Positions 653 through 57,436 of a stretch of 64,000 nucleotides of DNA are shown piece after piece. How positions within the stretch are numbered: position 1 is the first letter of the stretch; the number at the start of each line of letters is the position of its first letter. The stretch lies in the IMG/VR virus record IMGVR_UViG_3300009011_000001, positions 62,001 to 126,000 of that record. One strand, written 5' to 3'. A program made the position numbers and the translations under genes. Under the pieces are notes generated by a model. The model was not told where the DNA came from, made no database searches, and worked only from the letters and a program-made list of their open reading frames with translations.

Positions 653-973
653 ATGGAGTCAGCGCAGAACAAGTTCATTTTCGATACGCCCAAAGATGGT
701 GGACTTAATCTTGAAATGCTCCAAAAGACTATTGCCTTCTTCGCCACAGAGCTGAACGATCAAAACCAATTCCTCAGCGACTATCAGTATACGTTTTTGA
801 GGGAGTCCTTCGGTGCTAATTCAAAGGCCATTGAGGACGTCTGCAACAAAGCCCTGGACATTTTGGAATATAGTGGCGTCATGAGAGAATTGATCGTGCC
901 CGGTCAAATCCTTAATGATGTAAGCTGCGATCTGAACGAAGACTGCGGTAGAATAATCTTGGAGTGGTTATGA
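653..973 (+). CDS. Hypothetical protein
   Basis: 106 aa; GAGGAG RBS upstream. Confidence 0.75.
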   Translation: MESAQNKFIFDTPKDGGLNLEMLQKTIAFFATELNDQNQFLSDYQYTFLRESFGANSKAIEDVCNKALDILEYSGVMRELIVPGQILNDVSCDLNEDCGRIILEWL

Positions 974-1335
974 ACGCATTAGCCAAGGTAGATAAAGATA
1001 CGGTGTTCCTGATCGAAGAGAACGCCTTCAACCGATTCAAGACCAAGGAAGAAATGATGGGTCATCTCGCCATCCTACGTGGCATGGCTGAACAGATCAC
1101 CGAGAGCGTACCCGTCAGTCTGGAGATTGCCATCTGGCCATCGACCGACCTGTTCCTTATGGGACACCCTGCGAAGTCCCCTGTTAGAACCTTGTACTCT
1201 GTACTTTCAGAAGTCCTCGCTTCTTCAGGATTCTCGATAGGGGTGCTCATGACCCTTGAGGTTGAGAACCATGAACCATACGACACCACCGCCATCAGGG
1301 TGGAAGGCCGCTACAGAATCTTTACCGTCCACTAA
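964..1335 (+). CDS. Hypothetical protein
   Basis: About 121-123 aa; GGAG RBS and ATGA overlap with the previous stop. Confidence 0.7.
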   Translation: MVMNALAKVDKDTVFLIEENAFNRFKTKEEMMGHLAILRGMAEQITESVPVSLEIAIWPSTDLFLMGHPAKSPVRTLYSVLSEVLASSGFSIGVLMTLEVENHEPYDTTAIRVEGRYRIFTVH

Positions 1336-1765
1336 TGTCCATGTAGAGCGCTTCCTCTTTGATATCACGAAGGAGGTCAGCGCATTCGTGGACAACTCTG
1401 ACTATGGGGTAGAGGACTTAACTTACGATGTTCCGCGAATCGTAGCTTACTTCCAATTCGCCACAACCGACGTCGAGCTGTTAGCGGAGTATTTCTGGAC
1501 AAAGTACATTGCCGGTACGCCGAAGGATTCGATCATTCTTGCGTCACAGGCCGATAAGCAATTGTACCCGGATATGAACGAACAGTTTGAATCACAAGGA
1601 ATTGTGAAAGCCGACATTGTCGGCATAGACGTCGATTATACGGAGCATTCAACTAAAGGCCTTATCGAATGTTTTGTATTTGTCAGAGCCAAAGTTCGGA
1701 GTAAACCAGATGGTCTACCAGCGGGTAGTGGGCTTTTGCCCCGACTTAGTCACAAGGATCGATGA
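1271..1765 (+). CDS. Hypothetical protein (start uncertain)
   Basis: ORF overlapping both neighbours in a tightly packed operon. Confidence 0.6.
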   Translation: MNHTTPPPSGWKAATESLPSTNVHVERFLFDITKEVSAFVDNSDYGVEDLTYDVPRIVAYFQFATTDVELLAEYFWTKYIAGTPKDSIILASQADKQLYPDMNEQFESQGIVKADIVGIDVDYTEHSTKGLIECFVFVRAKVRSKPDGLPAGSGLLPRLSHKDR

Positions 1766-2129
1766 GCTCGTAGCCGAGAAATTCGAATACGAGTATTTTG
1801 ATGATCCGATCAGTGATGCCAGAGCTGAGATGATTCGTGAGATGGACAGCTACTGGTACCGCCGGCAGCTTTTCGAGGCCTTTGGTGGCATCAATCACGT
1901 TGCTCTGCTCCGCAATGAATTGCAAGAGCTTGCTAAGGTCGTTGAGGGCCACGAGCTCCTTGAGGCATGTTGTCTCATGTATCGTCCATTCATCCTGCAC
2001 TTGTCGGATGAAGGCTTCTTTGCAATTGACTGCATTGAAGCAAATAGCAGTAAACTGTCGGTTGCTCTTCAGGTTGAAGAGAATAATAAAAGGAAGTTTA
2101 TTAAACCATCAGTTGAGAGCAGTCAATGA
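1674..2129 (+). CDS. Hypothetical protein (start uncertain)
   Basis: 151-aa ORF; ATGA overlap with the next gene. Confidence 0.6.
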   Translation: MYLSEPKFGVNQMVYQRVVGFCPDLVTRIDELVAEKFEYEYFDDPISDARAEMIREMDSYWYRRQLFEAFGGINHVALLRNELQELAKVVEGHELLEACCLMYRPFILHLSDEGFFAIDCIEANSSKLSVALQVEENNKRKFIKPSVESSQ

Positions 2130-2518
2130 AACTTGATTCGAGCGCACTACAGGCGACGCTGACGTTTGAAACCTACGCCGGCGTCAAATACAACAACCTC
2201 AAGTTCCTCGCTATCCTCGACGCAGGGTCTGTGAGCGATCTGGGCCAAGATCCTTTTGGTCTGCATCTTCAGAACCTGCCGTACCTGCCCGACCCGAAAC
2301 CCGAAGCTTACACCGATTATAGCTACGCCCTGTTCCGCGACGCCGAGGGAAAGAAAACCTACCTCGGCATTCCGTGGGTCCGTGAAGATTCGATTGTGAA
2401 TAAGGGGCAGCCGGATTATCTGATGACGATCCTTGCCCCGACACCAGCTCAGCTGGACTCTCTTCGCTCCATGGCCATCGCCTCGGGCATCGAGAACTTT
2501 ACGCTTAAAGCAATTTGA
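2126..2518 (+). CDS. Conserved phiKZ-like protein (gp49-like position)
   Basis: 130 aa, LGIPWV motif, lies immediately upstream of the DNA polymerase gene. Confidence 0.65.
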   Translation: MKLDSSALQATLTFETYAGVKYNNLKFLAILDAGSVSDLGQDPFGLHLQNLPYLPDPKPEAYTDYSYALFRDAEGKKTYLGIPWVREDSIVNKGQPDYLMTILAPTPAQLDSLRSMAIASGIENFTLKAI

Positions 2519-2522
2519 AGAC

Positions 2523-2572
2523 GACATAAGGCCGGCCCGCAGGGGCTGGTTTTATGCCGCATTTTCTTTTTT
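2523..2572 (+). terminator. CATA-hairpin-TATG element with U-tract
   Basis: gacataa-ggccggccc-gca-ggggctggtt-ttatgcc followed by ttttctttttt. Confidence 0.8.
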
Positions 2573-2621
2573 CACTCGATGCACTAATGTTACATACGCC
2601 GAGCCCCATGGATGTAACGAA

Positions 2622-4751
2622 ATGTCAAAGAGTGCGAATCCTTTCATCCGCGATCTGGACGATTACCAGCGCGATATCGATATCCTCCCCGGTGCAAAAG
2701 AACAGATTGCGAAGTATGTAAGCCTACGACTGAAGATTACGTTTGAAGAAGCCTACGAATGGCTTGAGAAAAAGCTGAAAGATCCGCAATGGAAAATTAA
2801 AGACCCAGCAATGGAACGTCTGCTTCGTAAAGGACCCGGCAATCGGGTCGAAGACGAAACGACCTTCCTGCAGTACATCGAAGAGATCATCGACAACAAC
2901 TGGATTCTGTCGCCCGCACTGGTAGCGTATCAGCGTCCTGAAGTTGAGCTGTCTCCGATTGCTGAATGGCAAGAAGATAACATTGCTGCACGTAAGAAAT
3001 CCAAGACCAACATGTTCGTCCTGAAACAGGCCGGTCAGTTGCTCAAGTCTGCTTTGGCGGACTATGACCAGAACGCACGGAAGATTCGGATCAACGCCGT
3101 ATCTGGGCAGCATGGTTCTGAAGCTAACCCGTTGTATCAAGCTACCGGTCACTATAGCCTCACAGCTCTCTGCCGAGCTGCAGCGGGGTACGGTAACGGC
3201 ACCGTTGAACGCTTCCTCACGGGATCTAAACATTATCACACGCCCGAGATAGCCAAGGCGAATCTTGTCGCGATTCTTACCATGGAAGATAAGAGTCGCT
3301 TTCAAGAGGCCATGGATTTCTACGAGCTGACATATCCTGAAGTAGACGACGTGCTGGCAATGGTTGAGCATTCGACCAGCCTGTATTGGAAGTCTCCAGA
3401 AGAGTCTGCCATCATCCGTGATTGCATCACCGGCATGACGCCACTGGAGCGAGCCATTGTTACCTACTCGGGTGACATGTTCCACTTGGCTAAGCACAAC
3501 CCGGACATCATCCGTGAATTCATGGGTGAAATGATTGTCGACAATATCGATGGCATGGAAGATGTCGATACTGACGCTGAGCTGAAAACCATGAACTCCA
3601 CAGATGTTGCGTACATCAACGCCCTGTGTGCTGACGTGATGATCGGTTCCGACCACAAGCGGGTAAAGGCAAACGACCCAGCTGGGTGGCAAGTCATCGG
3701 TAAGACAGCTCGTCGCTTTAAGGACGTGATGCAGCGATTCCAGTTGCTGATCTCGACCTTCTTCGTGCCTCGTCACCTGCCGCCGACTGTGGCTTCTCTG
3801 AAAGGCATTCAGCGCCGCGCTTGCCTGGCAGCAGATACCGACTCCTCCATCTTCACCTGCGAGTCGTGGGTTAAGTGGTATTCGGGCGACTTGAAACGCG
3901 GTCGCACACAAGACCGCATCTGGTACCTGACCACCTACATGGCGTGTCAATGCATTGCGCACTCTTTGGCAATGTTGTCGGCAAACGTCGGTGTGGAAAG
4001 AAAGAACATCTTCCGCTTGGCTATGAAGAACGAGTACGCATTCCCAGTGTTTGCACTCACGAACTTGGCCAAACACTACTTCTCGCTTATTTCTATGCGC
4101 GAAGGTAACGTGTACAAGAAGATGGACTTGGAGATCAAAGGCGTTGAGCTTCGTGGTTCCACTGTGCCAAAGGAAACTTTGGATGCAGCCAAGGACCTGA
4201 TGCAATTCATCCTGAACACTGCAAATGCCGGTGAGAAGATGAACGCCAAGAAGATGCTCACTGAAATTGCTGAGCGTGAGATCGAAACGATTCGTTCGAT
4301 TAAGCGCGGTGAGTACAAGTACCTGAAGTCTGCACAGATCAAGCCGAACAGCGACAAGATCATCCACTTCGAACTCTGGCAAGAAGTGTTTGGTCCAAAG
4401 TACGGCGAATCCGTGCTGCCACCTTTCCCGGTGGTGAAAGTAACAACCGAGCTGACCAACAAGACTCTGATGAAAGAGTGGTTGGAAGGCATCGAAGACA
4501 AAGAGTTGGCTGCACGCATGGTTGCTTGGCTGAACCGCACTGGTCGTGACAAGTTGCCTACCATGTATCTGCCTACTCAGGTTGTTCGAAATTCTGGCCT
4601 GCCAGTAGAGATTCAAGAAGCGGCAAACGTACGCAAGCTCGCTTACCAAATCAACTCCGGCTTCTACCGGATCCTTGAGTCCACAGGTTTGGCTATCGTC
4701 GACCGCAATCACCACCGTCTGGTGTTTGACTTCTTGAGGATGGCGGCATGA
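2622..4751 (+). CDS. Family B DNA polymerase, subunit carrying motifs B and C (phiKZ gp50-like)
   Basis: KIRINAVSG (motif B), AADTDS (motif C), KHYF and IKGVE; likely start MSKSANP at 2622. Confidence 0.9.
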   Translation: MSKSANPFIRDLDDYQRDIDILPGAKEQIAKYVSLRLKITFEEAYEWLEKKLKDPQWKIKDPAMERLLRKGPGNRVEDETTFLQYIEEIIDNNWILSPALVAYQRPEVELSPIAEWQEDNIAARKKSKTNMFVLKQAGQLLKSALADYDQNARKIRINAVSGQHGSEANPLYQATGHYSLTALCRAAAGYGNGTVERFLTGSKHYHTPEIAKANLVAILTMEDKSRFQEAMDFYELTYPEVDDVLAMVEHSTSLYWKSPEESAIIRDCITGMTPLERAIVTYSGDMFHLAKHNPDIIREFMGEMIVDNIDGMEDVDTDAELKTMNSTDVAYINALCADVMIGSDHKRVKANDPAGWQVIGKTARRFKDVMQRFQLLISTFFVPRHLPPTVASLKGIQRRACLAADTDSSIFTCESWVKWYSGDLKRGRTQDRIWYLTTYMACQCIAHSLAMLSANVGVERKNIFRLAMKNEYAFPVFALTNLAKHYFSLISMREGNVYKKMDLEIKGVELRGSTVPKETLDAAKDLMQFILNTANAGEKMNAKKMLTEIAEREIETIRSIKRGEYKYLKSAQIKPNSDKIIHFELWQEVFGPKYGESVLPPFPVVKVTTELTNKTLMKEWLEGIEDKELAARMVAWLNRTGRDKLPTMYLPTQVVRNSGLPVEIQEAANVRKLAYQINSGFYRILESTGLAIVDRNHHRLVFDFLRMAA

Positions 4752-4788
4752 TTGGCTGGACAAAACCATTAGAAAATCAAAAGGAGGC

Positions 4789-5322
4789 GTGATAATGATC
4801 CGCAGTATCAATGAACCGTTTGATGCACTCGAACTGACATTCCCGAATGGGAGTGTGGAAATGTGGAAGAACAGCGCTGAAACCTACGAGCAGTATTACG
4901 AGCGCGTGGCTTACGAACTGAAGACATCCGGCAGTTTCAAAGCTGCCGAGATCTGCAAGGTCCAGATCCTGGTCGGCGCAAGCGCAACCGTTTACGAAGT
5001 GACGGACCCAGATCTTCATCGCGTTATCTGGGAACTTCGCGACCTTTCGATTGCTGCCGATAAGTTCAAAGCGGTCATTACTTTCGAAACGGCCGTTGGC
5101 GAAGAAGGTAGTGAGAAGAAGCCAATCTTCATCGAGGTTTATCTCGTTGCCGATACCCCGGCCGCTGCAATGCGCAAAGCAGCCGATTATCTCGAAACGC
5201 GTCCAGGCACTGTGGTGAAGAATGTAGTTATCCAGCCGATCTATCCGCTGGATAGTAACGCTACCCAGACCTACAGTCTCGAAATGATCCAGACCCCTCA
5301 GGTGTTCACACCACCAGCTTAA
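4789..5322 (+). CDS. Hypothetical protein
   Basis: 177 aa; AGGAGG RBS. Confidence 0.75.
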   Translation: MIMIRSINEPFDALELTFPNGSVEMWKNSAETYEQYYERVAYELKTSGSFKAAEICKVQILVGASATVYEVTDPDLHRVIWELRDLSIAADKFKAVITFETAVGEEGSEKKPIFIEVYLVADTPAAAMRKAADYLETRPGTVVKNVVIQPIYPLDSNATQTYSLEMIQTPQVFTPPA

Positions 5323-5334
5323 AAGAAGCATTGC

Positions 5335-5376
5335 GGCATACAGGCAGGGCGCAAGCCCTGCCTGTCACCTATGTCG
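5335..5376. terminator. Bidirectional hairpin (GCAA loop) with CATA/TATG flanks
   Basis: acaggcagggc-gcaa-gccctgcctgt between convergent genes. Confidence 0.8.
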
Positions 5377-6451
5377 GCATGCGTTCAAAAACGTACTTGT
5401 TCAGACGACCTTCGAGGAATACGGAAGCTGCGGTCGGAAGTCCATTGGACATGACCTTATCTTCTTTATTCACGATAGCCATGCGCCTGATCACAGTCAG
5501 CTCGTGGAGCATCTTGTCGTAACCTGCCCGCTTACCCACCTCAAGCATTACCGAGGCTGCATCGACCTTGTGGGAGATCAGAGCCCACAATACCTGAGCA
5601 GTTGGTGAAGTCAGCGGCAGGGTAACGCTGTCGAGGTAATTGTCTCCAAAGATGGCCGGAATCGTAGAGAGGATCTGGTTAGCCCCCATCTCTTTACCCA
5701 GCATTTTGTTCAACACATCCTCGGCTACCTCATCACCTACTTGGTTCGCGATATTCTGAGCAAACAGCAAATTGCTCTTAACGCCACACGGATTCCGGAT
5801 ATCCAGATACGCCATGATCTTGTTAAACAGCGCAACGTTCAGGTGGCTCTTCATCATCTGTGGTAGGACGTAGCCGGTAACGAACGCTTCCATGTTCTTT
5901 TCAGGGAAGGTCGCTTTAAACATTCGCCACTTGGCCGCAAGTAGAGGAATGTCGATAGCCACCACTGCCAGATCTGAAACGTCGATCTTTGCAGAGTTCA
6001 TCACAGCTGGTTCAAAGATCGTAAGATCGGAGATAGGGTGGTTCACTACCCAGACTGGCTCCACGTCCCGCCAGTTAGTCCACAGGTCCATCATTTTGAA
6101 CCGTGGGTTACGGGCGTACATGATGATCTCAGGACAGCCGTCGTAGAAGACGCTCTCCGTAAAGAGACGACCTTTGCTAAAGCTGGACGTCATCTTTAAG
6201 GTAGGGACCAACCGTAGACTCGCACCCTCGCAGCGCTCAAGGTACTTGACCATGTCCCCATCGAACTCAACGCCGAGGCTGTTGATGATCTTGAAGAGGA
6301 GGTGGGAGCTATCAACACGTCCGGGAAGCAAGGCACGTTCATGGACGTACTTCAGATAGTTCTCTTCCACGCGTTGCCGAAGGAGGACCATCTTGGCAAA
6401 CTGGAAAGGGGAGTTGTCGAACCGGTTCTTCGGATTTAAGATGTTGTACAT
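5369..6451 (-). CDS. Conserved phiKZ-like protein (gp52-like, probable virion protein)
   Basis: 360 aa; divergent from chmA as in phiKZ-like phages. Confidence 0.75.
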   Translation of the reverse strand: MYNILNPKNRFDNSPFQFAKMVLLRQRVEENYLKYVHERALLPGRVDSSHLLFKIINSLGVEFDGDMVKYLERCEGASLRLVPTLKMTSSFSKGRLFTESVFYDGCPEIIMYARNPRFKMMDLWTNWRDVEPVWVVNHPISDLTIFEPAVMNSAKIDVSDLAVVAIDIPLLAAKWRMFKATFPEKNMEAFVTGYVLPQMMKSHLNVALFNKIMAYLDIRNPCGVKSNLLFAQNIANQVGDEVAEDVLNKMLGKEMGANQILSTIPAIFGDNYLDSVTLPLTSPTAQVLWALISHKVDAASVMLEVGKRAGYDKMLHELTVIRRMAIVNKEDKVMSNGLPTAASVFLEGRLNKYVFERMPT

Positions 6452-6829: not shown

Positions 6830-8791
6830 ATGTCTGACGATAATCTGTTCAAAGACGGTAACAACGACCAATCTCACGCAGGTACCGAACAACGTCAAAA
6901 CGAACGCACCACCCACGAATCTGCGCAACAACGCTACGAACAGCCAGCACCATCGGCCTGGACTCTGGCTGATCTGGGTAACGTCCAAGGTCGTCCAAGC
7001 CTTGGCGGTCTGACCGACGGCGCTCTGTCGCTGATGATCGAAACCTTCGAAGAAGCCAAGGACCGTGCAAGCGGCCGTGTTCCCGAAGAAATCAGCTCCA
7101 AGCGCTTCAAAGCTCTGCCGCTGGTTGGCCAGCGCATCGGTAGTCAGATGTCGGCTCTGCTGATCGCTCTGCCTGCGACCATCGCCAACAAGCTGTACGC
7201 AATCGTCTACATCGCTCTGATCGAACCGGCTGGCCCGATGGCTACCCGTTCTCTGTCCGACGGCCAAGGCACTTACGAAGCTCTGTACCTGCCGGAAGAC
7301 CGCCTGACCGAGAAATACGTGAAGGCCATCCGTGACGAAGTGTCGGCCAACATCCCAGGCGCGCAAATCGTTATCGCCGGTCGTCAAGTGATCACCCAGG
7401 GCACCGTTGCTGCGCTGAACGAAAAAGAAGGCGTGGGCATCATCGAGCGCATCTTCGACAACGGCTTCGACGCAATCTGCGGCTACCGCCAGAACATGAT
7501 CGATGCCATCACCGGTCAGCGTACCAGCGATCGTCGCATCAACCCGGACGCCGTCGGTCGCCGTGACCGTCTGGAAGCCAGCTTCGACTTCTCCGGTGCC
7601 CAGCCTCTGGACACCTCGGGTCTGCCGATCGCTTCCGACGCCGCAATGACCATCTGGTACTCGGCCGCCGACCAGGACGAAGAAGGTAACTACAACCGTA
7701 TTCCTCTGGCCGAAGCGCGCATGTCGCTGAACCTGTTCCTGGATCAAAGCACCAAGCAAAACACCCTCGGCTTCGGCCGTCGTCGTGATCGCAACAAAGA
7801 TGACCCGGCTCCGTTCCAAGCGGTGCTGACCATCAACAACGTGACCTCGCCGCAAGGTGTTCCGTTCTCCCTGGAACTGGCGCAGCTGACCATCGCAGCT
7901 ACCGCAATCCTGTCGAACGACTACCGCTGGGCTGAAATCCTGCGTCCGCGCGCTACCATGCCTTCCGGCCTGAAGCCTGCGTACAACATCAAAGACCTCG
8001 TGCATTTCGCCGACGTCACCGATGAGCAGCGTGAAAAGATCCTGCAAGCCGTTACTCCGAACATCAGCGACGCCGACCTGTCGAACTACCTGGACCTGGT
8101 CGTTCAACCGCAAATCGCTTTCGCAATCGTGGCTCCAAGCTCCTGCGAGAAATCGTGGGTTCTGTCGATCTACGAGAAGATCGCAATGGCGAAGAACGAT
8201 GCCGAGCGCCGTGCTCTGACCACCACCCTGTACGACAGCGCCGACGTCGTGACCGGCAAGCGCTTCCGTAAGGTTCTGCGCGAACTGGGCGGCGACGACA
8301 GCACTCCACCAGTTGTTCTGACCGGCAACCCGACTCTGGTCGGTACCTGGGTCGACTCCGACGGTCGCGAGCGCGCTCTGAGCGAAATTCAGAACGTGCC
8401 TGCGGTCCTGAGCCGTGTCGGCGCGAAAGGTCTGGAGCTGGTTGAAGACTTCCAGTTCACCATCCAGGACGATCGTCGTCCGGTTCCGGCCAACTTGGCG
8501 GACCGCTTCGGCATGTTGAACAAGTCCTTCGGTTCGATCCACGTTGTGACCACTGCAGAACAAGTCGGCCTGGTGCCGATCTACCTGCAAGCGCTGAACA
8601 TCTCCCTGCAACAGGCCAACATGACCTGCGTACCGACTTCCCTGGAAGGTACTCAGACTCGTCGTCGTCCTGCTTCGGGCGGTTACGGCGGCCTGGCCAC
8701 CAACGATATCGGCGCCACTCGCCGTCAAGGTTCCGGCTTGTCCGGCCTGAACACCCGTGGCAACGATCCGTTCGGCGGTCGCTACTTCTAA
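6830..8791 (+). CDS. chmA: Chimallin, the major phage nuclear shell protein (phiKZ gp54/PhuN-like)
   Basis: 653 aa, strong codon bias, AAGGAG RBS, low-complexity N and C termini, located between the gp52-like gene and the nvRNAP beta' gene. Confidence 0.85.
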   Translation: MSDDNLFKDGNNDQSHAGTEQRQNERTTHESAQQRYEQPAPSAWTLADLGNVQGRPSLGGLTDGALSLMIETFEEAKDRASGRVPEEISSKRFKALPLVGQRIGSQMSALLIALPATIANKLYAIVYIALIEPAGPMATRSLSDGQGTYEALYLPEDRLTEKYVKAIRDEVSANIPGAQIVIAGRQVITQGTVAALNEKEGVGIIERIFDNGFDAICGYRQNMIDAITGQRTSDRRINPDAVGRRDRLEASFDFSGAQPLDTSGLPIASDAAMTIWYSAADQDEEGNYNRIPLAEARMSLNLFLDQSTKQNTLGFGRRRDRNKDDPAPFQAVLTINNVTSPQGVPFSLELAQLTIAATAILSNDYRWAEILRPRATMPSGLKPAYNIKDLVHFADVTDEQREKILQAVTPNISDADLSNYLDLVVQPQIAFAIVAPSSCEKSWVLSIYEKIAMAKNDAERRALTTTLYDSADVVTGKRFRKVLRELGGDDSTPPVVLTGNPTLVGTWVDSDGRERALSEIQNVPAVLSRVGAKGLELVEDFQFTIQDDRRPVPANLADRFGMLNKSFGSIHVVTTAEQVGLVPIYLQALNISLQQANMTCVPTSLEGTQTRRRPASGGYGGLATNDIGATRRQGSGLSGLNTRGNDPFGGRYF

Positions 8792-12095: not shown

Positions 12096-12138
12096 GCAGG
12101 AGCCTTCGGGCTCCTGCTACCCGCCTTCTTTTTTTTTT
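12096..12138 (+). terminator. Intrinsic terminator
   Basis: gcaggagcc-ttcg-ggctcctgc followed by a long T run. Confidence 0.8.
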
Positions 12139-28291: not shown

Positions 28292-28343
28292 CGGCATACA
28301 GCCCGGCGCAATGCCGGGCTGTATGCCGCACTTCTTTTTTTTT
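28292..28343. terminator. Bidirectional CATA-hairpin-TATG element
   Basis: cggcatacagcccggc-gcaat-gccgggctgtatgccg followed by a T-tract. Confidence 0.85.
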
Positions 28344-28345
28344 TG

Positions 28346-29863: not shown

Positions 29864-31156
29864 TTACCTCAAGAAGTTCTCAACATCGAGATCGGTTGTC
29901 TGAAGAGCCTTGGCGTGAGCAGAAGCCATCATCCTCGCCATCATGACCGACGGAATGTCCCCAATCATAGAGCCAAGGCTGTCAGGGTACTTGGCGAGCT
30001 TAGCGCCAGCGCAGATTGCGCACATGTCCCCGTTAGGCGTCTTGCAATAGCCAGGGGAGTACATTGGATAGATGCGACCCTCGTACTCCGGCAGGTTTTC
30101 TTCAGTGATCTGAACGATCTTCCCATCGATCAAAAAGTTCCGGCCAACACGGCGGCTCTCAACCTTCTGAATGAACTGCTCGTCGGTCTCGCAGAACTCT
30201 GGGACAATCTTGGCGTTCTGGAACACCCGGTTCATCAAGTCAACGTCTTCACCCGCCAGAGCGGTCAAAGCACCACGGAAGAAGGAACCAGCCCGCAGGC
30301 TGTTTACCATCTCAGGGTAGTAGTTGACGTCAAGACCTTCAAGCAGGCTGTTAGGGATCAGTGTTGCACGACCACCTTCTTCGAACCCGCCCTCAGGACC
30401 GTGAATAAGGAACATCCGCTTAATCGCCGTCTTGAACGATTTGGCTTTCAGCAAGAAGCCTTCAGCTGGGTTGCCCTTGATCATGTCCATGTAGTTCTTG
30501 ATCATGATGTCTTGGATCTTCGCCTGAATAACAGGATCGTCCAATTGACCTTTATGCTCTTCGAACAACTTGTCACGTAATTGCTTGTTGTCAGGCGGCG
30601 GCTGGAGCGACAACTCAGTCATCGACGGGATGAAGATCTCATACCCGCACAGGTCACCGATAGCGCGACCGAGGCGTTTATAATGCTTCACGTAAATCTG
30701 AGCCGGATCTTCTTCGGCTTCAGGCACGTCAGAGATCATCTTGTCGCAGACGATCTTGGCGATCTTCTTGATCTCGACCTGACCTGCTTGATAAGGATAG
30801 CGATCACCCAGTGCGTAAACCAACACGCGACTGTTGAAGATCAGGTCGCCCCAAGTGTTATCCTCAGGACGATCTTCTTTCAGGTTCTCTACATCACCTG
30901 CCCGAAGAGGGCCGCAGTCATCGTGATAGATGAATGGGATCTCATAAGGCTTGGTGTCTTCGAGAACCTCCCAGTCGAACCCGTTGTTGCCGTTCGGGAC
31001 GTAAACCTCAACAGCCTTGTCGGTGTGGCGCAATGTCCAAGGTTTGGGCTCCCCGGGAATCTCACCGATAACAGTGGTCATCGCCCGGAGAATCCATTCT
31101 CGGTTGTAGTGCGCCTGTGCCTTCATAGACCCGACGAAGTAGTCATGCCTATTCAT
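29864..31156 (-). CDS. Virion RNA polymerase beta'-like middle subunit (gp80-like)
   Basis: SLRAGSFFRGALTALAGE segment and SPGYCK...MCAICAG Zn motif. Confidence 0.85.
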   Translation of the reverse strand: MNRHDYFVGSMKAQAHYNREWILRAMTTVIGEIPGEPKPWTLRHTDKAVEVYVPNGNNGFDWEVLEDTKPYEIPFIYHDDCGPLRAGDVENLKEDRPEDNTWGDLIFNSRVLVYALGDRYPYQAGQVEIKKIAKIVCDKMISDVPEAEEDPAQIYVKHYKRLGRAIGDLCGYEIFIPSMTELSLQPPPDNKQLRDKLFEEHKGQLDDPVIQAKIQDIMIKNYMDMIKGNPAEGFLLKAKSFKTAIKRMFLIHGPEGGFEEGGRATLIPNSLLEGLDVNYYPEMVNSLRAGSFFRGALTALAGEDVDLMNRVFQNAKIVPEFCETDEQFIQKVESRRVGRNFLIDGKIVQITEENLPEYEGRIYPMYSPGYCKTPNGDMCAICAGAKLAKYPDSLGSMIGDIPSVMMARMMASAHAKALQTTDLDVENFLR

Positions 31157-32132: not shown

Positions 32133-32621
32133 ATGGGTAAAAAGAAAAGTAAGCAGGGGGGATTCCAAGCGCGCGGAACATCACCTCTTCAAAATTGCAT
32201 CCGTAATGAGCGGTCAGTTCTGAAAAGCAGCAGTAAGCTGGATGCGTCGATTGCAGACGCCGCTAAAATTCTGGTCGAGTTGCCGGCCGGCATGAGCGAA
32301 CTGAAACGCTCAGGTCACGAAGGTCGCATCCCGGATCTCATCGCGCTGAACCGATCCACCGCCCGTGACCTCGACGGTTTTGTTGCTGAGAAAGTAAAGC
32401 TGGATAAGACGCTGCAGTCTCACGTCGCCAGCCGTCCTTCCGATATCTCCGAACTGGCTGATTATAATAGCCGTACGCTGAGCATCGGTAATGACTTCGT
32501 TCAACTCGGCCAGAAGATGATCAGCACCGTCGGTAAGAGCACCGAGCAGATCATCAACATCCTTACACCAGAAGCTGACGAGCCGAGTGTCGCGCCCGTC
32601 CTTGAAGAGGCAGTAGTCTGA
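32133..32621 (+). CDS. Hypothetical helical protein
   Basis: 162 aa; TGATG coupling to the next gene. Confidence 0.8.
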   Translation: MGKKKSKQGGFQARGTSPLQNCIRNERSVLKSSSKLDASIADAAKILVELPAGMSELKRSGHEGRIPDLIALNRSTARDLDGFVAEKVKLDKTLQSHVASRPSDISELADYNSRTLSIGNDFVQLGQKMISTVGKSTEQIINILTPEADEPSVAPVLEEAVV

Positions 32622-34453
32622 TGACCGACGAAACTACCGGCATTGGCGCAGAAGGCGCCGATAACGATACCGGCACTCCTTTGAACGCAGCGGAGGGTAG
32701 CTTCCATGCCGACGATGTACATGATCCGGCTAACGCCTCCGACGATGATTTCAATGTTGCCGCTGCCGAAGAGAACCCACCCGAAGCTCCGGCACCAGTT
32801 GCATCTGCGCCAGTCGGTGACAACATCCAGGACGAACTTCCTCAACTGCCTGAAAACCCGGCGGATGACGAACCAGAAGAAATCTACTCCGGCGACTGGA
32901 ACCCAGTCCCTGGCGTAAGTATCGATCAGGCTCCGATTACTGAGCCGATGACCGATGAGCTTCTGGCCCAGTTCGCCAAGTTTGGTAAAGTAGTTCTGAC
33001 GAACATGAACCTGCCGGAAGTTCTGCAGCTCGATCAGATCCTGCGTCTGCGCATCATGGTCGCTCAGCGCGATCGCTACGACCGTATCAACAAAGGTCTG
33101 CCGGCTGACAGCTTCATCGAAATCGATATGCCGCAACTTGGCAAGATCTACATGACCGATGAAGAGCAGCGTGCTCTGAATCTGATCAACGATTTCAAAC
33201 GTCAGGTGGCGTTCAACCACATCGGCGACATTATCGAAGACGACGAGAAAGCAACGAACCGTCCGATGGTCGATGGCCAGCCCATCATGATGGGCCTGGC
33301 TTCCAACCCAGGTAATAACGATGGCCTCGCCGCCATTCGTGAAGATCTGGGTCTGGGCCACAAGATCGCCGTTCCTTTCTGGGCAAGTGGTTTCCACGCC
33401 CGCATGGCAGCGCCGGGTGCGTTGGCGCAGATCAGCCTCGATACCCAGCTGGGCCAAGAGAAGATCCGTGAAGCATTGGAATCGGCCGGCTACGCTTTGG
33501 CAGCGCCTGCGGTATTCCTGAACCGCGAAATCACCGATCATGCGATCAAGCACTTGATCTCGACTACCCTCGGTACTGTCGATGCGAAGACCATCAAGGA
33601 AACGCTGTCGATCCTCGACTTCGATCAGATCGTTACGTCGCTGGCTTATGCCACGTATCCAAAAGGTTTCCCTGTTACTCGCCGTTGCGTTAACAGCGCA
33701 CTGAACTGCGATGGCGAAATCACCGACCTGATGAACATCAACCGTATGGTTATTGTTCTTGAAGAACGGCTGGATCAGAACCAACTGCGGTTCATGTCCA
33801 AGCGTGGCGGTAACAGCGTCGTTGACCTGAAGAACGTCAAGGCGTATCAGGAGAAGATGCGTCCGAACATCAGCCGCTACGTTGAGCTGAAGCCGGGTAT
33901 TCGCCTGAAGCTACGCATTCCGACTATTGCTCAGTACGAAGCTACCTCCACAGCGTGGATCGACAACATGACGGCGGAAGCCAAAGCGTTGATCGGCACC
34001 AATGCTCGCGAAGAAGATCGTCAGAACTATCTGGTTCGCGCACAGGCCGTTTCGACGGTGATGGCGTACGCTCACTGGGTTGAAGCAATTGTCCGTCAGG
34101 GCGCTGAACTGGAAGACGAGCCGATCGTTGTTAAAACCCGTAACCTGGGTGAGAACGCAACGCCGGATCAACAGTTCGAAGCCGATCGTGAGATCGACGA
34201 GTTCCTGCGTGACTTCGCATCCAGCCCTGAGCTGACTCAGTTGTTCACGGCCGCGCTGGAGAAATTCATCGCTGCAATGACCATTACCTGCGTCTGCCTG
34301 CCGAAAGTGCATTGCCCGAAATGTGGCCAGCCTATCGACAAGGACACCGGCTCCAAGCAAGACCACCCAGAGCTGGTTACCATTAACCCAACCGAGTTTT
34401 TTTTTACCCTACTCCGCCGCAAAATCGCAAGTGCATTGCGTACGACCAACTAG
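32621..34453 (+). CDS. Conserved protein (gp77-like), candidate tail/baseplate assembly chaperone; 0-frame product of a putative frameshift pair
   Basis: 610 aa; acidic N-terminus; C-x6-C and CPKC Cys motifs; T9 run near the 3' end. Confidence 0.8.
   Translation: MTDETTGIGAEGADNDTGTPLNAAEGSFHADDVHDPANASDDDFNVAAAEENPPEAPAPVASAPVGDNIQDELPQLPENPADDEPEEIYSGDWNPVPGVSIDQAPITEPMTDELLAQFAKFGKVVLTNMNLPEVLQLDQILRLRIMVAQRDRYDRINKGLPADSFIEIDMPQLGKIYMTDEEQRALNLINDFKRQVAFNHIGDIIEDDEKATNRPMVDGQPIMMGLASNPGNNDGLAAIREDLGLGHKIAVPFWASGFHARMAAPGALAQISLDTQLGQEKIREALESAGYALAAPAVFLNREITDHAIKHLISTTLGTVDAKTIKETLSILDFDQIVTSLAYATYPKGFPVTRRCVNSALNCDGEITDLMNINRMVIVLEERLDQNQLRFMSKRGGNSVVDLKNVKAYQEKMRPNISRYVELKPGIRLKLRIPTIAQYEATSTAWIDNMTAEAKALIGTNAREEDRQNYLVRAQAVSTVMAYAHWVEAIVRQGAELEDEPIVVKTRNLGENATPDQQFEADREIDEFLRDFASSPELTQLFTAALEKFIAAMTITCVCLPKVHCPKCGQPIDKDTGSKQDHPELVTINPTEFFFTLLRRKIASALRTTN
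34397..34405 (+). other. Putative programmed -1 frameshift or slippage site (GAG TTT TTT TTT)
   Basis: T9 in register as T TTT TTT; the -1 frame is open from 34387 to 34890. Confidence 0.65.
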
Positions 34454-34527
34454 GAAAGGCGCACATCAACCACGTCGTCTCAATCGACTTCGGGGAAGAT
34501 GTTTCGCCGTATACGCCGGGCACCCAC

Positions 34528-34890
34528 ATGTACGACGTCATCTTGAATACCAAGATCGACGATTCAAAATCCAAGCGCCTTGTGTGGCTTGAAGCATACG
34601 ACCAAACCTTCGGTCTGTTCGACCATGAGAAAGATGGCCACCGGCCTGAAAATCAAATGGCAGTCATGCGCATGCATCCGGCTGAGGACATGGCTACGGG
34701 AAACCGTTTGCGTGGATTGATGAAAGAGTTGGTTGCCTGTCGTATTCCCGAGATCACCAACGAACCCCTATCGAGACTCCTCCATTATCCTTTGGATATT
34801 TTGGAAGAGTATTTGGTAGAGGGGCGTAAAGCTCGTGCGCATCAGCAAAAGCTTCAGGATGATCTTGAGGCGGGGTTGAAAGAGAAGTAA
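34528..34890 (+). CDS. Conserved protein (gp76-like), probably the C-terminal extension of the frameshifted product
   Basis: Frame extends upstream to 34387 without a stop; ATG 34528 has no clear RBS. Confidence 0.7.
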   Translation: MYDVILNTKIDDSKSKRLVWLEAYDQTFGLFDHEKDGHRPENQMAVMRMHPAEDMATGNRLRGLMKELVACRIPEITNEPLSRLLHYPLDILEEYLVEGRKARAHQQKLQDDLEAGLKEK

Positions 34891-34892
34891 AC

Positions 34893-34929
34893 GACATAGA
34901 CCCCGGCACTGAGCCGGGGTCTATGCTGT
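34893..34929. terminator. Bidirectional CATA-hairpin-TATG element
   Basis: catagaccccggc-actga-gccggggtctatg between convergent genes. Confidence 0.85.
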
Positions 34930-34931
34930 CA

Positions 34932-36257
34932 TCAGAAGAGCTTACGAACGTTGTCCCGATACTTGCTGATGTAGTTGTTGGCAGAGATGTTGATCTTGCC
35001 TTTATTAGCGAGCAGGAACTTGTCGACCACCTTCGTTACTTCCAGACCACCTTTGGCAATCTTCAGCGTCGCTTCGTTACGGGCTTCAACCAACTGAGCC
35101 AGAGCGTTCTCCAGTTCAGTGAAAGCCTGCACCGTCGACGTGATGTTGCCGAAGAAGGAAGTCAGGTGAATAGCGTAGGCATCTTGCAGGCCGGGCTTCA
35201 ACGCAGTCTCGCTGAAGTTCGCCAGACGATCCAACACAGGGCCAGTTTTTGCACTCGACCATTTGATCGTTTCGATGATCTCTTTGGACCAATCGTCGAT
35301 CTGCATGTTCAAGATCAGTTCGCTGTACTTCTCTTTGGAGAGCTGGCCGTGGCGGCTAGACAGCGACTTCATGTAACCCTGGATGTAGTTGGTGACCGAT
35401 TGGAAATCAGACATCCGCTTGTCGACGTGAATGTCACGGCGAGAGTAGCCATAGCTGGTCGCCAGATTGGTCAGGTTACCATTCGTCAGGTTCAGCATCT
35501 TCAGCGTTTCGATCGCCTCACGGATGTCCACTTCAGTCTCGGCTGTAACCAAGTCATTCATGAACTCATCGACCGCCTGAATGAACGGAGGAATCGTTAC
35601 CTTGAGAGCGCCAGAGATTGCATCCAGTGCCCGGTTCCGATCCTCAGCCTTCTCGATGAAGAACGTGTGGATTTCACGCCAGCCTTTGTTCAGGTTGTTC
35701 AGCGAGTTGACGATAGCGCCTTGGCGCACCTTGCGGTAGTCGTCAGCCACAGGCAGGTTGTGCAGGGTCTTGTCGACATTGATCAGGTAGTCCTGAACAG
35801 CCGCTACACGATCAGCCAGACTGTCAATGGCAATCGTACGGCGTTCGTTACCGTTCAGGAATTCCCACAGGCGTTTGAAGGAACGCACGATGAAGTTCAA
35901 GATATCGCGCAGCACCTTAACCACGGCGTTGTACGCAGTGGACACGAAGCCTTCAGTAGAGACGGCGTAGTTGATGCTGCTCGGATCCGAGGTGAAACTA
36001 CCCACGGGATATTTCTGGAGGAGCTTCTTCAGAGAGGGGTATTTCTCAGCCAGGTGCTGAACTTTCTGAATGTCGTCACGACACACAACGCCACGGTTCA
36101 GAATCCCGCTATAAGAAGCGAAGACCAGATCCATGTCGTTATAGTCCTGAGTGTACAGGGGATTATCGGGTACCACTCGGGTTTGTTCAAACAGTTCGGC
36201 ATCCGGAATGACCTCATCCGACTCGAACGATGCGTCTTCCAAAAATACAGTGCTCAT
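34932..36257 (-). CDS. Internal head protein (gp86-like)
   Basis: 441 aa; SFE and STE prohead-protease-type sites. Confidence 0.75.
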   Translation of the reverse strand: MSTVFLEDASFESDEVIPDAELFEQTRVVPDNPLYTQDYNDMDLVFASYSGILNRGVVCRDDIQKVQHLAEKYPSLKKLLQKYPVGSFTSDPSSINYAVSTEGFVSTAYNAVVKVLRDILNFIVRSFKRLWEFLNGNERRTIAIDSLADRVAAVQDYLINVDKTLHNLPVADDYRKVRQGAIVNSLNNLNKGWREIHTFFIEKAEDRNRALDAISGALKVTIPPFIQAVDEFMNDLVTAETEVDIREAIETLKMLNLTNGNLTNLATSYGYSRRDIHVDKRMSDFQSVTNYIQGYMKSLSSRHGQLSKEKYSELILNMQIDDWSKEIIETIKWSSAKTGPVLDRLANFSETALKPGLQDAYAIHLTSFFGNITSTVQAFTELENALAQLVEARNEATLKIAKGGLEVTKVVDKFLLANKGKINISANNYISKYRDNVRKLF

Positions 36258-36296
36258 TTCACGTCCTTCTTAACAAATTGTTTTAGTGAAGCCGCC

Positions 36297-36740
36297 TTAG
36301 GCAGCTTCTTTCTCGATGTGGCTCTTGAGCAGGGCTACAGTGTCCGAGATCTTGCCGGAGTCCAGGCAGAGGTTGTCCATCTCAGGAACGAGGTTGCGGA
36401 AAACATCGCCGAACATCTTGTCGCCATGGAGCAGATCCATTGGCTTGCAGCAGTAGGCAATCTCGTAACGGCGCTGGTAGATCTTGAACGCCAGTTGTTG
36501 GGCACGATCGACTTCGAACGGGAGGATCTCGTTGATGTCGTACATGCAGGCCTGATACTGCTCGATGTTCTCGAAGAAGTATTGCTGCAGGCCTTGCTCA
36601 GGCACGTCAGCAGGAGGCAGGTGTACTTGGCTACCGACGGCCAGTGCGATGCACAGAGTAACGTGCTGACGCAGGCAGGACTGATCAAAGCCGGCCGGCA
36701 AGTTGTTGAAGTGGTTGTGGACTGCGATCGGATTGAGCAT
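36297..36740 (-). CDS. Virion structural protein (gp85-like)
   Basis: 147 aa; operon context. Confidence 0.7.
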   Translation of the reverse strand: MLNPIAVHNHFNNLPAGFDQSCLRQHVTLCIALAVGSQVHLPPADVPEQGLQQYFFENIEQYQACMYDINEILPFEVDRAQQLAFKIYQRRYEIAYCCKPMDLLHGDKMFGDVFRNLVPEMDNLCLDSGKISDTVALLKSHIEKEAA

Positions 36741-36745
36741 GGTTC

Positions 36746-38044
36746 CTACCTTAGGTCGGCTGAGAATTCAAAGAAACGGTTGTTAGCAAGGTTTTCCTTC
36801 ATCTGATTCGCACCAAGTGAATGAGCCTTGCCCGAAATCATATCCAGCGTGTACGTCGTGAGCTGGTTGATGACGTTAACGAACGGGTGGATGTTGCTGG
36901 CTTCTTCGTCGATGATCTTGAGGTCAGCGAGAGCCTGCTTGCGCAAGTCTACTGGCAGATCACGATCCTTCAGAAGGTTGACGATTTCGTTACGGATAGC
37001 TCGGATGCGTTGCTGCATCGGAGGGTACACGTCGGCTTTCAGGCCGTAGAAGCTGCCGCTAATAAAGAAGCTAGCGGCAAAGCCAAACGCCAGACGACGC
37101 ATGACGTGCAGGGTCAGTTCTGCAATACCTTTCGACAGAGCAAAACCGTAGGGCAACATAACAACGGTCAGGAGGTTGCTCATCACACCCACCCACATGT
37201 TGTCGTAGCCAGGCTCCGCATCCATCCAGCCTTTTGCTCGTTCCAACTTGCTGAGCGCACGAACCAGATCTTTACCAACCATCCAGCGGGCAGCAAACTG
37301 ATCGGCCATTGCTTCAGCCAACCGTTGATCGTACCAACGGGTGTTGTAGGCGCGCTGCATGCGCTTGACCTGACCTTCCAGCACCAGTGCCGTGATCTCG
37401 CTACTGGACACGTCGCTTGGAATCTTCTGATCGTTCTCAGAGAGCTTCAAGGCACAGCGGGCAAGGGCGAACTTACGGGACTCGCTTTCCTGCATGTCCA
37501 TCCGACCGACCAGCTCGGCGAGGATCACGTTGGTCAGAAGCGTCTGACCTAGGAACTCACAGATCGACCAAGGATGGCCAAGTTCGTGAGTGAAGATGGC
37601 GGCCAGTTCAGCGGCTTCGAAACTACCGTCGAACATCGTGTGGGAAATGCCGCAGCGGAAAGGGATCTTCGAATAGAAGCCAGACACCTTGCCATTCTTA
37701 CGGTCGATCGAACCATTGAGGATCTCGATCGTTTCGAGCTTACCCAGCTCGTACTTGTCCATCATCTCCGACGCCTTCACGTTGATCGGAGAGTAGGCGT
37801 TGAAGTTTGGATCAAGCACGAACATGCTGAAAGCTTTTGCAGCTTTGCTTTCAAGCAGGACTGGAGTAACGAACAGCCCGGTTGCACCACCGACGATCGG
37901 AGTGATCTGTTCGAACAGGGCATCGGATTCAGGCCTTGAGGCTTTTATGTCGATGATTTTCTGAAAAACAGCAGCAATGGCCTTTGGAAGATTGCTATTC
38001 GTTTGAAATGCAATAGCCTCCATCGACTCTTGGAATTGACCCAT
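36746..38044 (-). CDS. Virion zincin-like metallopeptidase-family protein (gp84-like)
   Basis: HELGH (HExxH) and downstream EAMADQFA; hydrophobic segments; N-terminal SME site. Confidence 0.75.
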   Translation of the reverse strand: MGQFQESMEAIAFQTNSNLPKAIAAVFQKIIDIKASRPESDALFEQITPIVGGATGLFVTPVLLESKAAKAFSMFVLDPNFNAYSPINVKASEMMDKYELGKLETIEILNGSIDRKNGKVSGFYSKIPFRCGISHTMFDGSFEAAELAAIFTHELGHPWSICEFLGQTLLTNVILAELVGRMDMQESESRKFALARCALKLSENDQKIPSDVSSSEITALVLEGQVKRMQRAYNTRWYDQRLAEAMADQFAARWMVGKDLVRALSKLERAKGWMDAEPGYDNMWVGVMSNLLTVVMLPYGFALSKGIAELTLHVMRRLAFGFAASFFISGSFYGLKADVYPPMQQRIRAIRNEIVNLLKDRDLPVDLRKQALADLKIIDEEASNIHPFVNVINQLTTYTLDMISGKAHSLGANQMKENLANNRFFEFSADLR

Positions 38045-57382: not shown

Positions 57383-57436
57383 GGCATACACCGGCTCCCA
57401 TCAGGGAGCCGGTGTATGTTGCTTTCTTTTTTTTTT
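57383..57436. terminator. Bidirectional CATA-hairpin-TATG element
   Basis: catacaccggctccc-atca-gggagccggtgtatg followed by a T-tract. Confidence 0.85.

Follow-up and report, generated by a model that had tools for sequence, protein, structure and literature searches.

A conserved candidate −1 frameshift site near the end of a core gene of phiKZ-like jumbo phages

Programmed −1 frameshifting near the 3′ end of a phage gene occurs in the tail assembly chaperones of lambda (G/GT), P2 (E/E+E′), and Mu, in which a shift on a slippery heptamer a few codons before the stop of the upstream open reading frame (ORF) gives two proteins with a common N terminus, one with a C-terminal extension of about 150 aa. 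The upstream part of these pairs is about 100 to 140 aa, the genes lie between the tail-tube and tape-measure genes, and the arrangement is conserved while sequences diverge. In T7, a −1 frameshift near the end of gene 10A adds a dispensable C-terminal extension (10B) to a minority of molecules of the structural capsid protein. HIV-1 gag-pol and other sites of the U_UUU_UUA class slip with tRNA-Phe on a U-run and depend on a stem-loop or pseudoknot 5 to 9 nt downstream. Escherichia coli dnaX, an essential gene, makes its tau and gamma isoforms in a set ratio by recoding at a homopolymer, aided by an upstream SD-like element and a downstream hairpin, whereas Thermus dnaX does so by transcriptional slippage; in dnaX, the shifted product is the shorter one. 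The same outcome is thus reached by ribosomal or transcriptional slippage in different lineages, a precedent for the locus described below. T4 gene 26 (gp26/gp26′; PF12322, “gp26 family baseplate hub assembly chaperone”) also yields two products, but its second product comes from an internal in-frame start, so that the two share a C terminus rather than an N terminus.

We examined a 64,000-nt stretch (the window) of IMG/VR virus record IMGVR_UViG_3300009011_000001 (positions 62,001 to 126,000), in which an initial annotation had pointed to a T9 run near the end of a 610-aa ORF (ORF1) as a candidate −1 frameshift site fusing it to the downstream ORF (Table 1). The observation held in every sequence detail that we checked. 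ORF1 reads ACC GAG TTT TTT TTT ACC at the run, the last Phe codon lies 15 codons before the stop codon, and a −1 slip on the last heptamer gives 595 + 161 = 756 aa, as had been stated. The interpretation was partly supported: comparative evidence strongly backs a conserved recoding site giving 610-aa and 756-aa products, but resemblance to lambda G/GT holds only as an analogy of mechanism, and the suggestion of a tail or baseplate assembly chaperone received only weak support.

Table 1. Features of the ORF1-ORF2 locus (positions in the window)
Position	Strand	Feature	Basis
32133..32621	+	Upstream gene (162 aa, phiKZ gp078 position); its stop overlaps the ORF1 start, and it is probably in the same operon	ORF list; same gene order in the 28 annotated relatives and in metagenomic gene calls; no PHROG or Pfam match
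32621..34453	+	ORF1, 0-frame product of 610 aa (stop at 34451-34453); homologue of phiKZ gp077, PhiPA3 gp074, and SPN3US gp39 (Chimalliviridae core gene cg18); residues 1-95 predicted disordered, residues 96-610 a confident predicted fold	phrog_4585 at E 8e-70; tblastn hits in 215 phage records; PhiPA3 annotation notes; cg18 table (PMC10299810 supplement); 1118 representative clusters at E<=1e-3; AF2 model with pLDDT 87 and pTM 0.83
33686..33709	+	Codons of Cys356 and Cys363, first conserved Cys pair	At least 90% conserved in 130 homologues; a Zn site formed with the second pair is inferred
34313..34324	+	Codons of Cys565-Pro-Lys-Cys568 (CPxCG), second conserved Cys pair	At least 90% conserved; aligns with the CPECG of T4 gp26 in hhalign
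34384..34386	+	TAA in the −1 frame; 5′ limit of the interval in which a shift can reach ORF2	Sequence; in five close relatives (loci L011, L012, L027, L029, and L031) the −1 frame opens 1 nt before the run, and in L028 2 nt before it
34397..34405	+	Slippery run T9 (Phe593-Phe595), containing the in-phase heptamer T TTT TTT at 34399-34405	T6-T9 run at the homologous Phe-Phe in 38 of 38 loci, against codon usage
34406..34453	+	Dual-coding overlap; 0 frame encodes the tail TLLRRKIASALRTTN* (part of the predicted C-terminal helix, residues 590-609), −1 frame encodes YPTPPQNRKCIAYDQL	Codon-position variability mixed at 0.35/0.23/0.34; the 20 nt after the run almost invariant in the window's clade
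34405..34890	+	−1-frame extension, 161 codons plus the stop codon (TAA 34888-34890); C-terminal part of the predicted 756-aa fusion, including the stretch 34454-34527, which has no start codon	Coding periodicity in the −1 frame between the ORF1 stop and ATG 34528 in the window's clade (0.21/0.17/0.58); phrog_12109 at E 3e-14; AF2 model mostly helical with pLDDT 67
34426..34440		5-bp hairpin, weak, starting 20 nt after the run	104-nt fold with z = +0.40; not conserved in relatives
34528..34890	+	ORF2 as a gene caller sees it (120 aa from ATG 34528); probably not an independent gene	First ATG/GTG/TTG in the −1 frame; no GGAG-like motif in the 20 nt before it; ATG absent in relatives at 67-69% identity, which read THTYD instead of THMYD
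34894..34926	.	14-bp GC-rich hairpin between ORF2 and the convergent gene 34932..36257(−); likely two-way terminator and end of the operon	Sequence

The initial annotation had named loss of the run, or stops between it and the downstream ORF, in orthologues as grounds for rejection; the site passes this test, since orthologues keep the run and no stop lies between the run and the downstream ORF. We compared 38 loci: 28 deposited phage genomes, including a Bacillus phage, 9 metagenomic contigs, and the window. In 38 of 38, a T6-T9 run (T6 in 6 loci, T7 in 14, T8 in 10, and T9 in 8) sits at the same conserved Phe-Phe, 11 to 46 codons before the ORF1 stop, although the proteins are only 19 to 38% identical outside the window's clade. 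In all 38 the next ORF is in the −1 frame, and in 36 this frame is open for 151 to 178 codons beyond the run; one locus (L032) runs off its contig after 148 codons, and RVTF4 has an extra frame break inside ORF2. By contrast, the +1 frame runs only 2 to 91 codons in the 26 loci where it was measured, and at most 17 codons in 18 of them. An in-phase heptamer U_UUU_UUN is present in 34 of 38 loci, and Bacillus phage AgentSmith has exactly U UUU UUA; the other 4 lack a perfect X_XXY_YYZ heptamer but have UUU UUU A, the “six” motif recognized among annotated phage frameshifts (PMC10885494).

The run is selected at the nucleotide level and contradicts codon usage. Outside the site, TTT/TTC counts in ORF1 are 1/17 in the window, 0/14 in Xoo-sp14, and 0/18 in RSL2, and none of 16 other Phe-Phe dipeptides in these ORF1s forms T≥6. 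The product of per-lineage chance probabilities over 18 distant lineages is about 1e-18, and the chance that the −1 frame stays open from the run to the first start codon in 19 distant lineages is about 1e-42, although the independence assumed in both products is approximate. Independent initiation cannot make the conserved part of the extension: the first ATG/GTG/TTG in the −1 frame lies 16 to 89 codons after the run, depending on the locus, and in the phiKZ-like Churi, RAY-like Mortimer, PhiEaH1, AgentSmith, and locus L030 it lies beyond the conserved AYDxxFGIFxH motif. Both parts are under purifying selection. In 130 diverse homologues, representatives of clusters at 50% identity, the 0-frame tail after Phe-Phe is always 7 to 34 residues, and none has the extension fused in frame. 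By Tn-seq the core gene is essential in phiKZ: in the phiKZ Tn-seq tables (PMC12676376 supplement), 0 insertions are listed in PHIKZ077 and 0 in PHIKZ076.4, which lies on the + strand, in the −1 frame and 218 nt downstream, while the four flanking small genes carry 116 to 5481 reads.

We found no stimulatory element of the kind that usually accompanies −1 frameshift sites, although such elements are not obligatory in bacteria. The weak hairpin noted in the initial annotation (Table 1) is rejected as a conserved stimulator: RNAalifold predicted 0 pairs in 14 relatives, and z-scores scattered around zero in 37 loci, in analyses that did not cover pseudoknots or rRNA pairing; for upstream SD-like sequences, the absence rests on inspection by eye only.

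Our preferred explanation, which we hold with reasonable but not full confidence, is that ORF1 and the downstream ORF form one recoded gene. In this view, most ribosomes read ORF1 in frame and terminate at its stop, giving a 610-aa protein that ends in a short helix, while a fraction slips back one base on the U-run (U_UUU_UUU, with tRNA-Phe in the P and A sites) and reads UAC CCU onward in the −1 frame. The resulting 756-aa protein (84 kDa; junction EFFFYPTPPQNR) would share the first 595 residues, with a Pro-rich linker and a helical domain of about 120 residues replacing the terminal helix. The site would be ancient and obligatory; it is kept in every relative examined, across hosts from Pseudomonas to Bacillus, implying that both isoforms, or their ratio, are needed. 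Our analysis establishes the anatomy of the site, its conservation, selection on the run, and coding constraint in the −1 frame where no start codon exists; the fusion product itself, a ribosomal rather than transcriptional shift, its efficiency, and the function of the protein, including any role in baseplate hub assembly, are inferred.

Transcriptional slippage, in which RNA polymerase (a phage-encoded multisubunit enzyme in these phages) adds one U to part of the transcripts, would give the same fusion by standard translation; we consider it unlikely but do not exclude it. The protein outcome and all of the comparative evidence are identical under this model. The T8-T9 runs of the window's clade are of a length at which bacterial polymerases slip, runs of 7 or more are preferred over the minimal T6 (32 of 38 loci), and no stimulatory RNA structure was found. 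However, 20 of 38 loci have only T6-T7, shorter than the 8 to 9 or more residues usually needed for efficient slippage, which favors a ribosomal event for the family, and 34 of 38 runs are phased as a ribosomal heptamer; because nothing is known about slippage by the phiKZ-type polymerases, this is not decisive.

The remaining alternatives are all very unlikely. Two ordinary genes, with ORF2 made as a free protein of about 14 kDa from its own start and the T-run only the way a conserved Phe-Phe happens to be encoded, is how all 28 deposited genome records annotate the locus (two separate CDSs with no join), and most loci do have some start codon somewhere in the −1 frame; but ATG 34528 lacks an SD and is lost in close relatives, the first start codon wanders and often lies inside or beyond conserved sequence, the start-less gap is coding-periodic, the run contradicts codon bias, and the −1 frame is open from the run in all loci. 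Termination-reinitiation would fit the proximity of the two ORFs on one transcript and the absence of an SD before ORF2, but it explains neither the conserved T-run, nor the open −1 frame across the 11- to 46-codon overlap upstream of the ORF1 stop, nor conserved −1-frame residues (FFYP...) starting at the run, nor gaps of up to about 70 codons without any start codon. A homopolymer sequencing error or recent frameshift mutation, the least likely of all, is for practical purposes refuted, even though homopolymers are error-prone and RVTF4 does show an additional frame break: 38 independent assemblies from different laboratories and platforms, among them eight other metagenome assemblies of the window's clade with T8-T9 at the same place, show runs of 6, 7, 8, or 9, always with the same −1 relation, and none of the 130 representatives is fused in frame.

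The locus does not belong with the lambda G/GT pairs, despite the conserved −1 shift near the 3′ end and the inferred N-coterminal longer product. If the gp26 link considered below holds, both would be non-virion assembly factors. Its neighbors are an RNA polymerase beta subunit gene (phrog_2962; phiKZ gp80 homologue), gp79-like and gp78-like genes, and a convergent 441-aa gene, an arrangement also seen in relatives, rather than tail-tube or tape-measure genes. ORF1 is four times too large, and the phiKZ homologue is listed as early-expressed. The two parts of the predicted fusion were analyzed separately, and neither matched a tail chaperone family or fold: phrog_4585 and phrog_12109 are of unknown function, a Pfam scan gave only a sub-threshold Zn-ribbon hit, a profile search of PDB sequences gave 0 hits, and Foldseek against PDB gave nothing significant for ORF1 (best E 0.77) or for the extension (best E 1.8, on a low-confidence model). 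An atlas search of the extension gave only chance-level hits, including a GpE-like one (score 0.84, 109 shared features) that we do not credit. Unlike the T7 capsid protein, the phiKZ homologue is not among the 40 virion proteins of the phiKZ structural atlas, and the extension region lacks Tn insertions in phiKZ.

A distant link between the C-terminal half of ORF1 and T4 gp26 is possible, but homology is not established. Both have two Cys pairs, a CPxCG about 20 to 30 residues before a C-terminal Phe-Phe-x-Leu, and collinear motifs. However, the window protein has no hit to PF12322 at E<=0.1, and only 1 of 90 family members hits it, at E 1.1e-3. In hhalign, full-length profiles gave 0.5% probability and the C-terminal segment gave 49% (E 1.7e-4 over 74 columns, including CPxCG and the terminal FFxL). 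Foldseek matched a BFVD model of a “T4-like baseplate hub assembly protein” at E 1e-3 with TM 0.26/0.48, and atlas neighbor clusters carry PF12322 in 14 to 24% of members. T4 gp26 is 208 aa, ends right after the Phe-Phe, and encodes the pair as TTC TTT with no run. Our best guess for function, a non-virion assembly factor distantly related to gp26, is tentative and, taken alone, less likely than not. It is also possible, though doubtful, that an essential core gene of all nucleus-forming jumbo phages and their relatives, down to a Bacillus phage, is decoded through an obligatory −1 frameshift, overlooked in every genome record examined, to make the jumbo-phage counterpart of gp26; the small “orphan” ORFs annotated downstream (phiKZ 076.4, PhiPA3 073, SPN3US 40, and others) would then be the C-terminal domain of a second isoform, and giant myoviruses would use a G/GT-like two-isoform strategy, arrived at independently, for a baseplate-hub assembly chaperone. 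If real, the gp26 link would connect jumbo-phage tail assembly with the least understood step of T4 baseplate hub assembly.

None of the papers checked, including the PRFect paper on frameshift prediction, the core-genome paper, a 2025 review of nucleus-forming phages, the phiKZ structural atlas, two Tn-seq preprints, and the SPN3US genetics paper, mentions a frameshift in this gene, although only open-access papers were covered and an earlier mention elsewhere cannot be excluded. The fusion would change the model of a core gene in more than 200 sequenced jumbo phages, remove a family of spurious small “hypothetical” genes with inconsistent starts, and offer a handle on a protein of unknown function through two isoforms that differ by a terminal helix versus a linker plus helical domain. 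Knock-down, Tn-seq, and proteomics data for phiKZ-like phages would need to be read accordingly, because insertions or antisense oligos aimed at “gp76.4” would hit gp77-long. The site would also add a deeply conserved bacterial-virus example of U-run −1 recoding that seems to work without a recognizable downstream structure, in hosts as different as Pseudomonas, Vibrio, and Bacillus, and a useful test case for ribosomal versus polymerase slippage.

The phage has no close sequenced isolate: megablast of the locus against phage genomes found no match. A word-indexed protein search reached only close relatives, and a scan with the single protein gave only 2 new loci. Within the 64-kb window, T≥8 occurs at only four places, so that the run in ORF1 is far from a chance feature; the other three are T10 tracts behind GC-rich hairpins between genes.

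The T9 run lies inside ORF1, in the reading ...ACC GAG TTT TTT TTT ACC CTA..., and the −1 frame, which is closed just upstream of the run, is open from there to the stop at 34888-34890. It passes through ATG 34528, which is the first ATG/GTG/TTG in that frame and has no SD-like motif in front of it. A slip on the last heptamer would give 595 + 161 = 756 residues, and the predicted junction in this phage would read ...EFFFYPTPPQNR, while in phiKZ-like phages it would read ...TFFYFGGLEVK. The sequence observation made in the initial annotation is correct. The window is identical to IMG/VR contig IMGVR_UViG_3300009011_000001 (248.6 kb). T≥8 occurs at only four places in the 64-kb window; the other three are T10 tracts, each 6-12 nt after a long GC-rich hairpin and outside long ORFs, which are probably intrinsic terminators and which share a short pyrimidine-rich spacer ending in TTC before the T-run.

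Coordinates of the proposed frameshift locus, its neighbors, and the related features discussed in the text
Sequence	Position	Strand	Feature
Window	12129-12138	+	T10 tract, probable intrinsic terminator
Window	28335-28344	+	T10 tract, probable intrinsic terminator
Window	57427-57436	+	T10 tract, probable intrinsic terminator
Window	29864..31156	−	RNA-polymerase beta subunit gene (phrog_2962)
Window		−	gp79-like gene
Window	32133..32621		gp78-like gene
Window	32621..34453		ORF1, 610 aa
Window	32621-32905		ORF1 residues 1-95, predicted disordered
Window	34384-34386		TAA in the −1 frame
Window	34397-34405		T9 run
Window	34406-34428		About 20 nt, almost invariant, directly after the run
Window	34426-34440		Hairpin proposed in the initial annotation
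Window	34528		First ATG/GTG/TTG in the −1 frame
Window	34888-34890		TAA ending the −1 frame
Window	34894-34926		14-bp GC-rich hairpin, likely two-way terminator
Window	34932..36257	−	441-aa ORF, convergent with ORF2
Window	34923-36806	+	627-aa ORF overlapping the 441-aa ORF
phiKZ	206831-208432	+	PHIKZ077
phiKZ	208651-208893	+	PHIKZ076.4
Pseudomonas phage RVTF4 (PQ015378.1)	about 2700-2760		Additional frame change in the ORF2 homologue
Erwinia phage PhiEaH1 (NC_023610.1)	1-1400		Start of record, inside the ORF1 homologue
T4	7803-8429	−	Gene 26, with nested product 26'

ORF1 matches phrog_4585 (E 8e-70) and the −1 piece matches phrog_12109 (E 3e-14), both of unknown function. A tblastn search found ORF1 in 215 phage records, all phiKZ-like jumbo phages, and an exhaustive HMMER search found 1118 clusters at 50% identity with E ≤ 1e-3. 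Annotation notes identify it with phiKZ gp077, PhiPA3 gp074, 201phi2-1 gp136, and EL gp047; the core-genome study of nucleus-forming phages lists phiKZ gp077 as core gene cg18, "hypothetical protein" (PMC10299810 supplement). Gene order is conserved: the RNA-polymerase beta subunit gene, a gp79-like gene, a gp78-like gene, ORF1, and then ORF2.

The initial annotation had set conservation of the run and of the frame relation among orthologous gene pairs as a test of its proposal, and we carried this out on 38 loci: the window; 28 deposited phage genomes with hosts in Pseudomonas, Erwinia, Salmonella, Serratia, Klebsiella, Proteus, Cronobacter, Ralstonia, Burkholderia, Xanthomonas, Stenotrophomonas, Vibrio, and Bacillus, plus a phage from a sea squirt; and 9 metagenomic contigs. 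Every locus has a T6-T9 run at the same conserved Phe-Phe, 11-46 codons before the ORF1 stop, and in every locus the downstream ORF is in the −1 frame. In 36 loci the −1 frame is open for 151-178 codons from the run. One of the remaining loci runs off its contig after 148 codons; in the other, RVTF4, the ORF2 homologue changes frame once more about 59 codons after the T-run, with the homologous sequence continuing in another frame, which is either an indel in the deposited sequence or a genuinely broken copy. The +1 frame, measured in 26 loci, is open for 2-91 codons, and for at most 17 codons in 18 of them. Run lengths are T6 (6 loci), T7 (14), T8 (10), and T9 (8). Of the 38 runs, 34 form the in-phase heptamer U_UUU_UUN, while four are (G/A) UUU UUU AC(C/G). 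The PhiEaH1 record starts inside the ORF1 homologue, which is therefore not annotated, and its first annotated CDS is the tail end of the −1 extension.

The run is selected as nucleotides and not only as Phe-Phe. Outside the site, the window's ORF1 uses TTT once and TTC 17 times; the corresponding counts are 0/14 in Xoo-sp14 and 0/18 in RSL2, and none of 16 other Phe-Phe pairs in these ORF1s forms T≥6. Given each lineage's own codon usage, the joint chance of T≥6 at this Phe-Phe in 18 distant lineages is about 1e-18, although the independence assumed in this product is approximate. If T4 gp26 is a distant relative (see below), it makes a useful contrast, since its terminal Phe-Phe is encoded as TTC TTT.

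Ordinary initiation cannot account for the −1 extension. The first possible start codon in the −1 frame lies anywhere from 16 to 89 codons after the run; in Churi (a Phikzvirus), Mortimer (RAY-like), PhiEaH1, AgentSmith, and one further locus of our comparison (L030), it lies beyond the conserved AYDxxFGIFxH motif. The window's ATG 34528 is absent from relatives of 67-69% identity, which read THTYD. In nine loci of the window's clade, the 24 codons between the ORF1 stop and ATG 34528 show mean pairwise differences of 0.21/0.17/0.58 at −1-frame codon positions 1/2/3, compared to 0.21/0.15/0.46 for upstream ORF1 and 0.20/0.12/0.49 for ORF2 proper. Using each locus's own density of −1-frame stops inside ORF1, the chance that the frame stays open from the run to the first start codon in 19 distant lineages is about 1e-42.

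The split between the two frames is never resolved among the homologues we examined: in 130 representatives of clusters at 50% identity, the 0-frame tail after Phe-Phe is 7-34 residues (median 14), and none carries the roughly 160-residue extension in frame. An arrangement kept this strictly implies that the unshifted and shifted products, or their ratio, are both needed. The 0-frame tail is part of a confidently predicted C-terminal helix (residues 590-609), in which Leu597 is at least 90% conserved, whereas the −1 frame begins with a conserved Tyr-Pro and a Pro-rich linker.

Independent data come from the supplementary tables of a phiKZ Tn-seq preprint (PMC12676376), with the caveat that the reading of the unlabeled columns is ours. 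PHIKZ077 has 0 insertions in Table S2 and 18 reads in Table S3, and PHIKZ076.4 has 0 insertions and 2 reads, respectively; four adjacent small genes on the minus strand have 116-5481 reads in Table S2 and higher counts, where shown, in Table S3. PHIKZ076.4 is in the −1 frame relative to PHIKZ077 and lies 218 nt downstream; because it is the last gene before convergent genes, a polar effect does not explain its lack of insertions. gp077 is not among the 40 proteins of the phiKZ virion atlas (PMC13250141), and its Churi homologue is listed among early-expressed proteins (PMC11849849).

As for mechanism, ribosomal −1 frameshifting and addition of one U by the RNA polymerase would give the same protein. 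We favor the ribosome because more than half of the loci have only T6-T7, because the phasing fits X_XXY_YYZ in 34 of 38 loci, and because a run of six identical bases is a recognized class among annotated phage −1 frameshift sites (PMC10885494). Against this, we found no stimulatory structure: the window's 104-nt fold has z = +0.40, 60-nt folds in 37 loci scatter around zero, RNAalifold on 14 relatives predicts no pairs, and the downstream hairpin proposed in the initial annotation is not conserved. T9 in the window's clade could well add a transcriptional component. The 20 nt after the run (ACCCTACTCCGCCRCA...) are nearly invariant in this clade, and about 20 nt at the homologous positions (ACCCTACTCCGCCRCARAAT) are almost invariant across loci whose ORF1 proteins are only 30-38% identical (loci L033-L037 of our comparison, with L036 the exception). 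Dual coding (TLLRR/YPTPPQ) may be enough to explain this, although a sequence-specific stimulator such as pairing with rRNA is not excluded. The anatomy of the site and its conservation are read directly from the sequences, whereas the fusion protein itself, the ribosomal nature of the shift, and the function of the gene are inferred.

With 130 homologues, ORF1 gives a confident predicted model (pLDDT 87, pTM 0.83), except that residues 1-95 are predicted to be disordered; this N-terminal region is acidic and Pro/Ala rich, and its length and sequence vary widely among homologues, with much longer versions in SPN3US-like phages and P0038. The predicted fold matches nothing in the PDB (best E 0.77), and a search of PDB sequences likewise gave no match. 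Among predicted viral structures it matches jumbo-phage homologues and also, at E 1e-3, a "T4-like baseplate hub assembly protein." Atlas neighbor clusters carry PF12322 (T4 gp26) in 14-24% of members, and one deposited genome already carries that label. Direct tests of the gp26 link were mixed: PF12322 hits 1 of 90 family members at E 1e-3, and hhalign of full-length profiles gives 0.5% probability, whereas the C-terminal segment gives 49% and E 1.7e-4 over 74 columns, which run through HWV/CIE and CPxCG and in which the final FFxL aligns with the very end of gp26. Both families have two conserved Cys pairs. We treat gp26 homology as possible but unproven. T4 gene 26 is annotated with a nested second product, 26', from an internal in-frame start; if gp26 is related, both families make two isoforms, but by different means and sharing opposite ends. 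The −1 extension models as helices at pLDDT 67 and has no fold match.

The initial annotation likened the locus to lambda G/GT, and its interpretation is only partly supported. The logic is the same, in that a −1 shift near the 3' end would produce a longer protein with the same N terminus, but membership fails on position (there are no tail-tube or tape-measure neighbors), on size, and on family and fold. While −1 frameshifting as a class of mechanism is well known, this case, its depth of conservation, and its location in a core gene that lacks Tn insertions in phiKZ appear to be new: none of the 28 GenBank records fetched annotates a join, and we found no mention of a frameshift in this gene in the literature searched, which was restricted to open-access papers.

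Downstream of the locus, a 627-aa ORF on the plus strand overlaps a 441-aa ORF on the minus strand. Neither has a PHROG match, and the plus-strand ORF, the only one of the two scanned against Pfam, has no Pfam match either; gene calls in close relatives take the minus-strand gene, of 441-448 aa. A GC-rich hairpin separates ORF2 from this convergent gene and is likely a two-way terminator.
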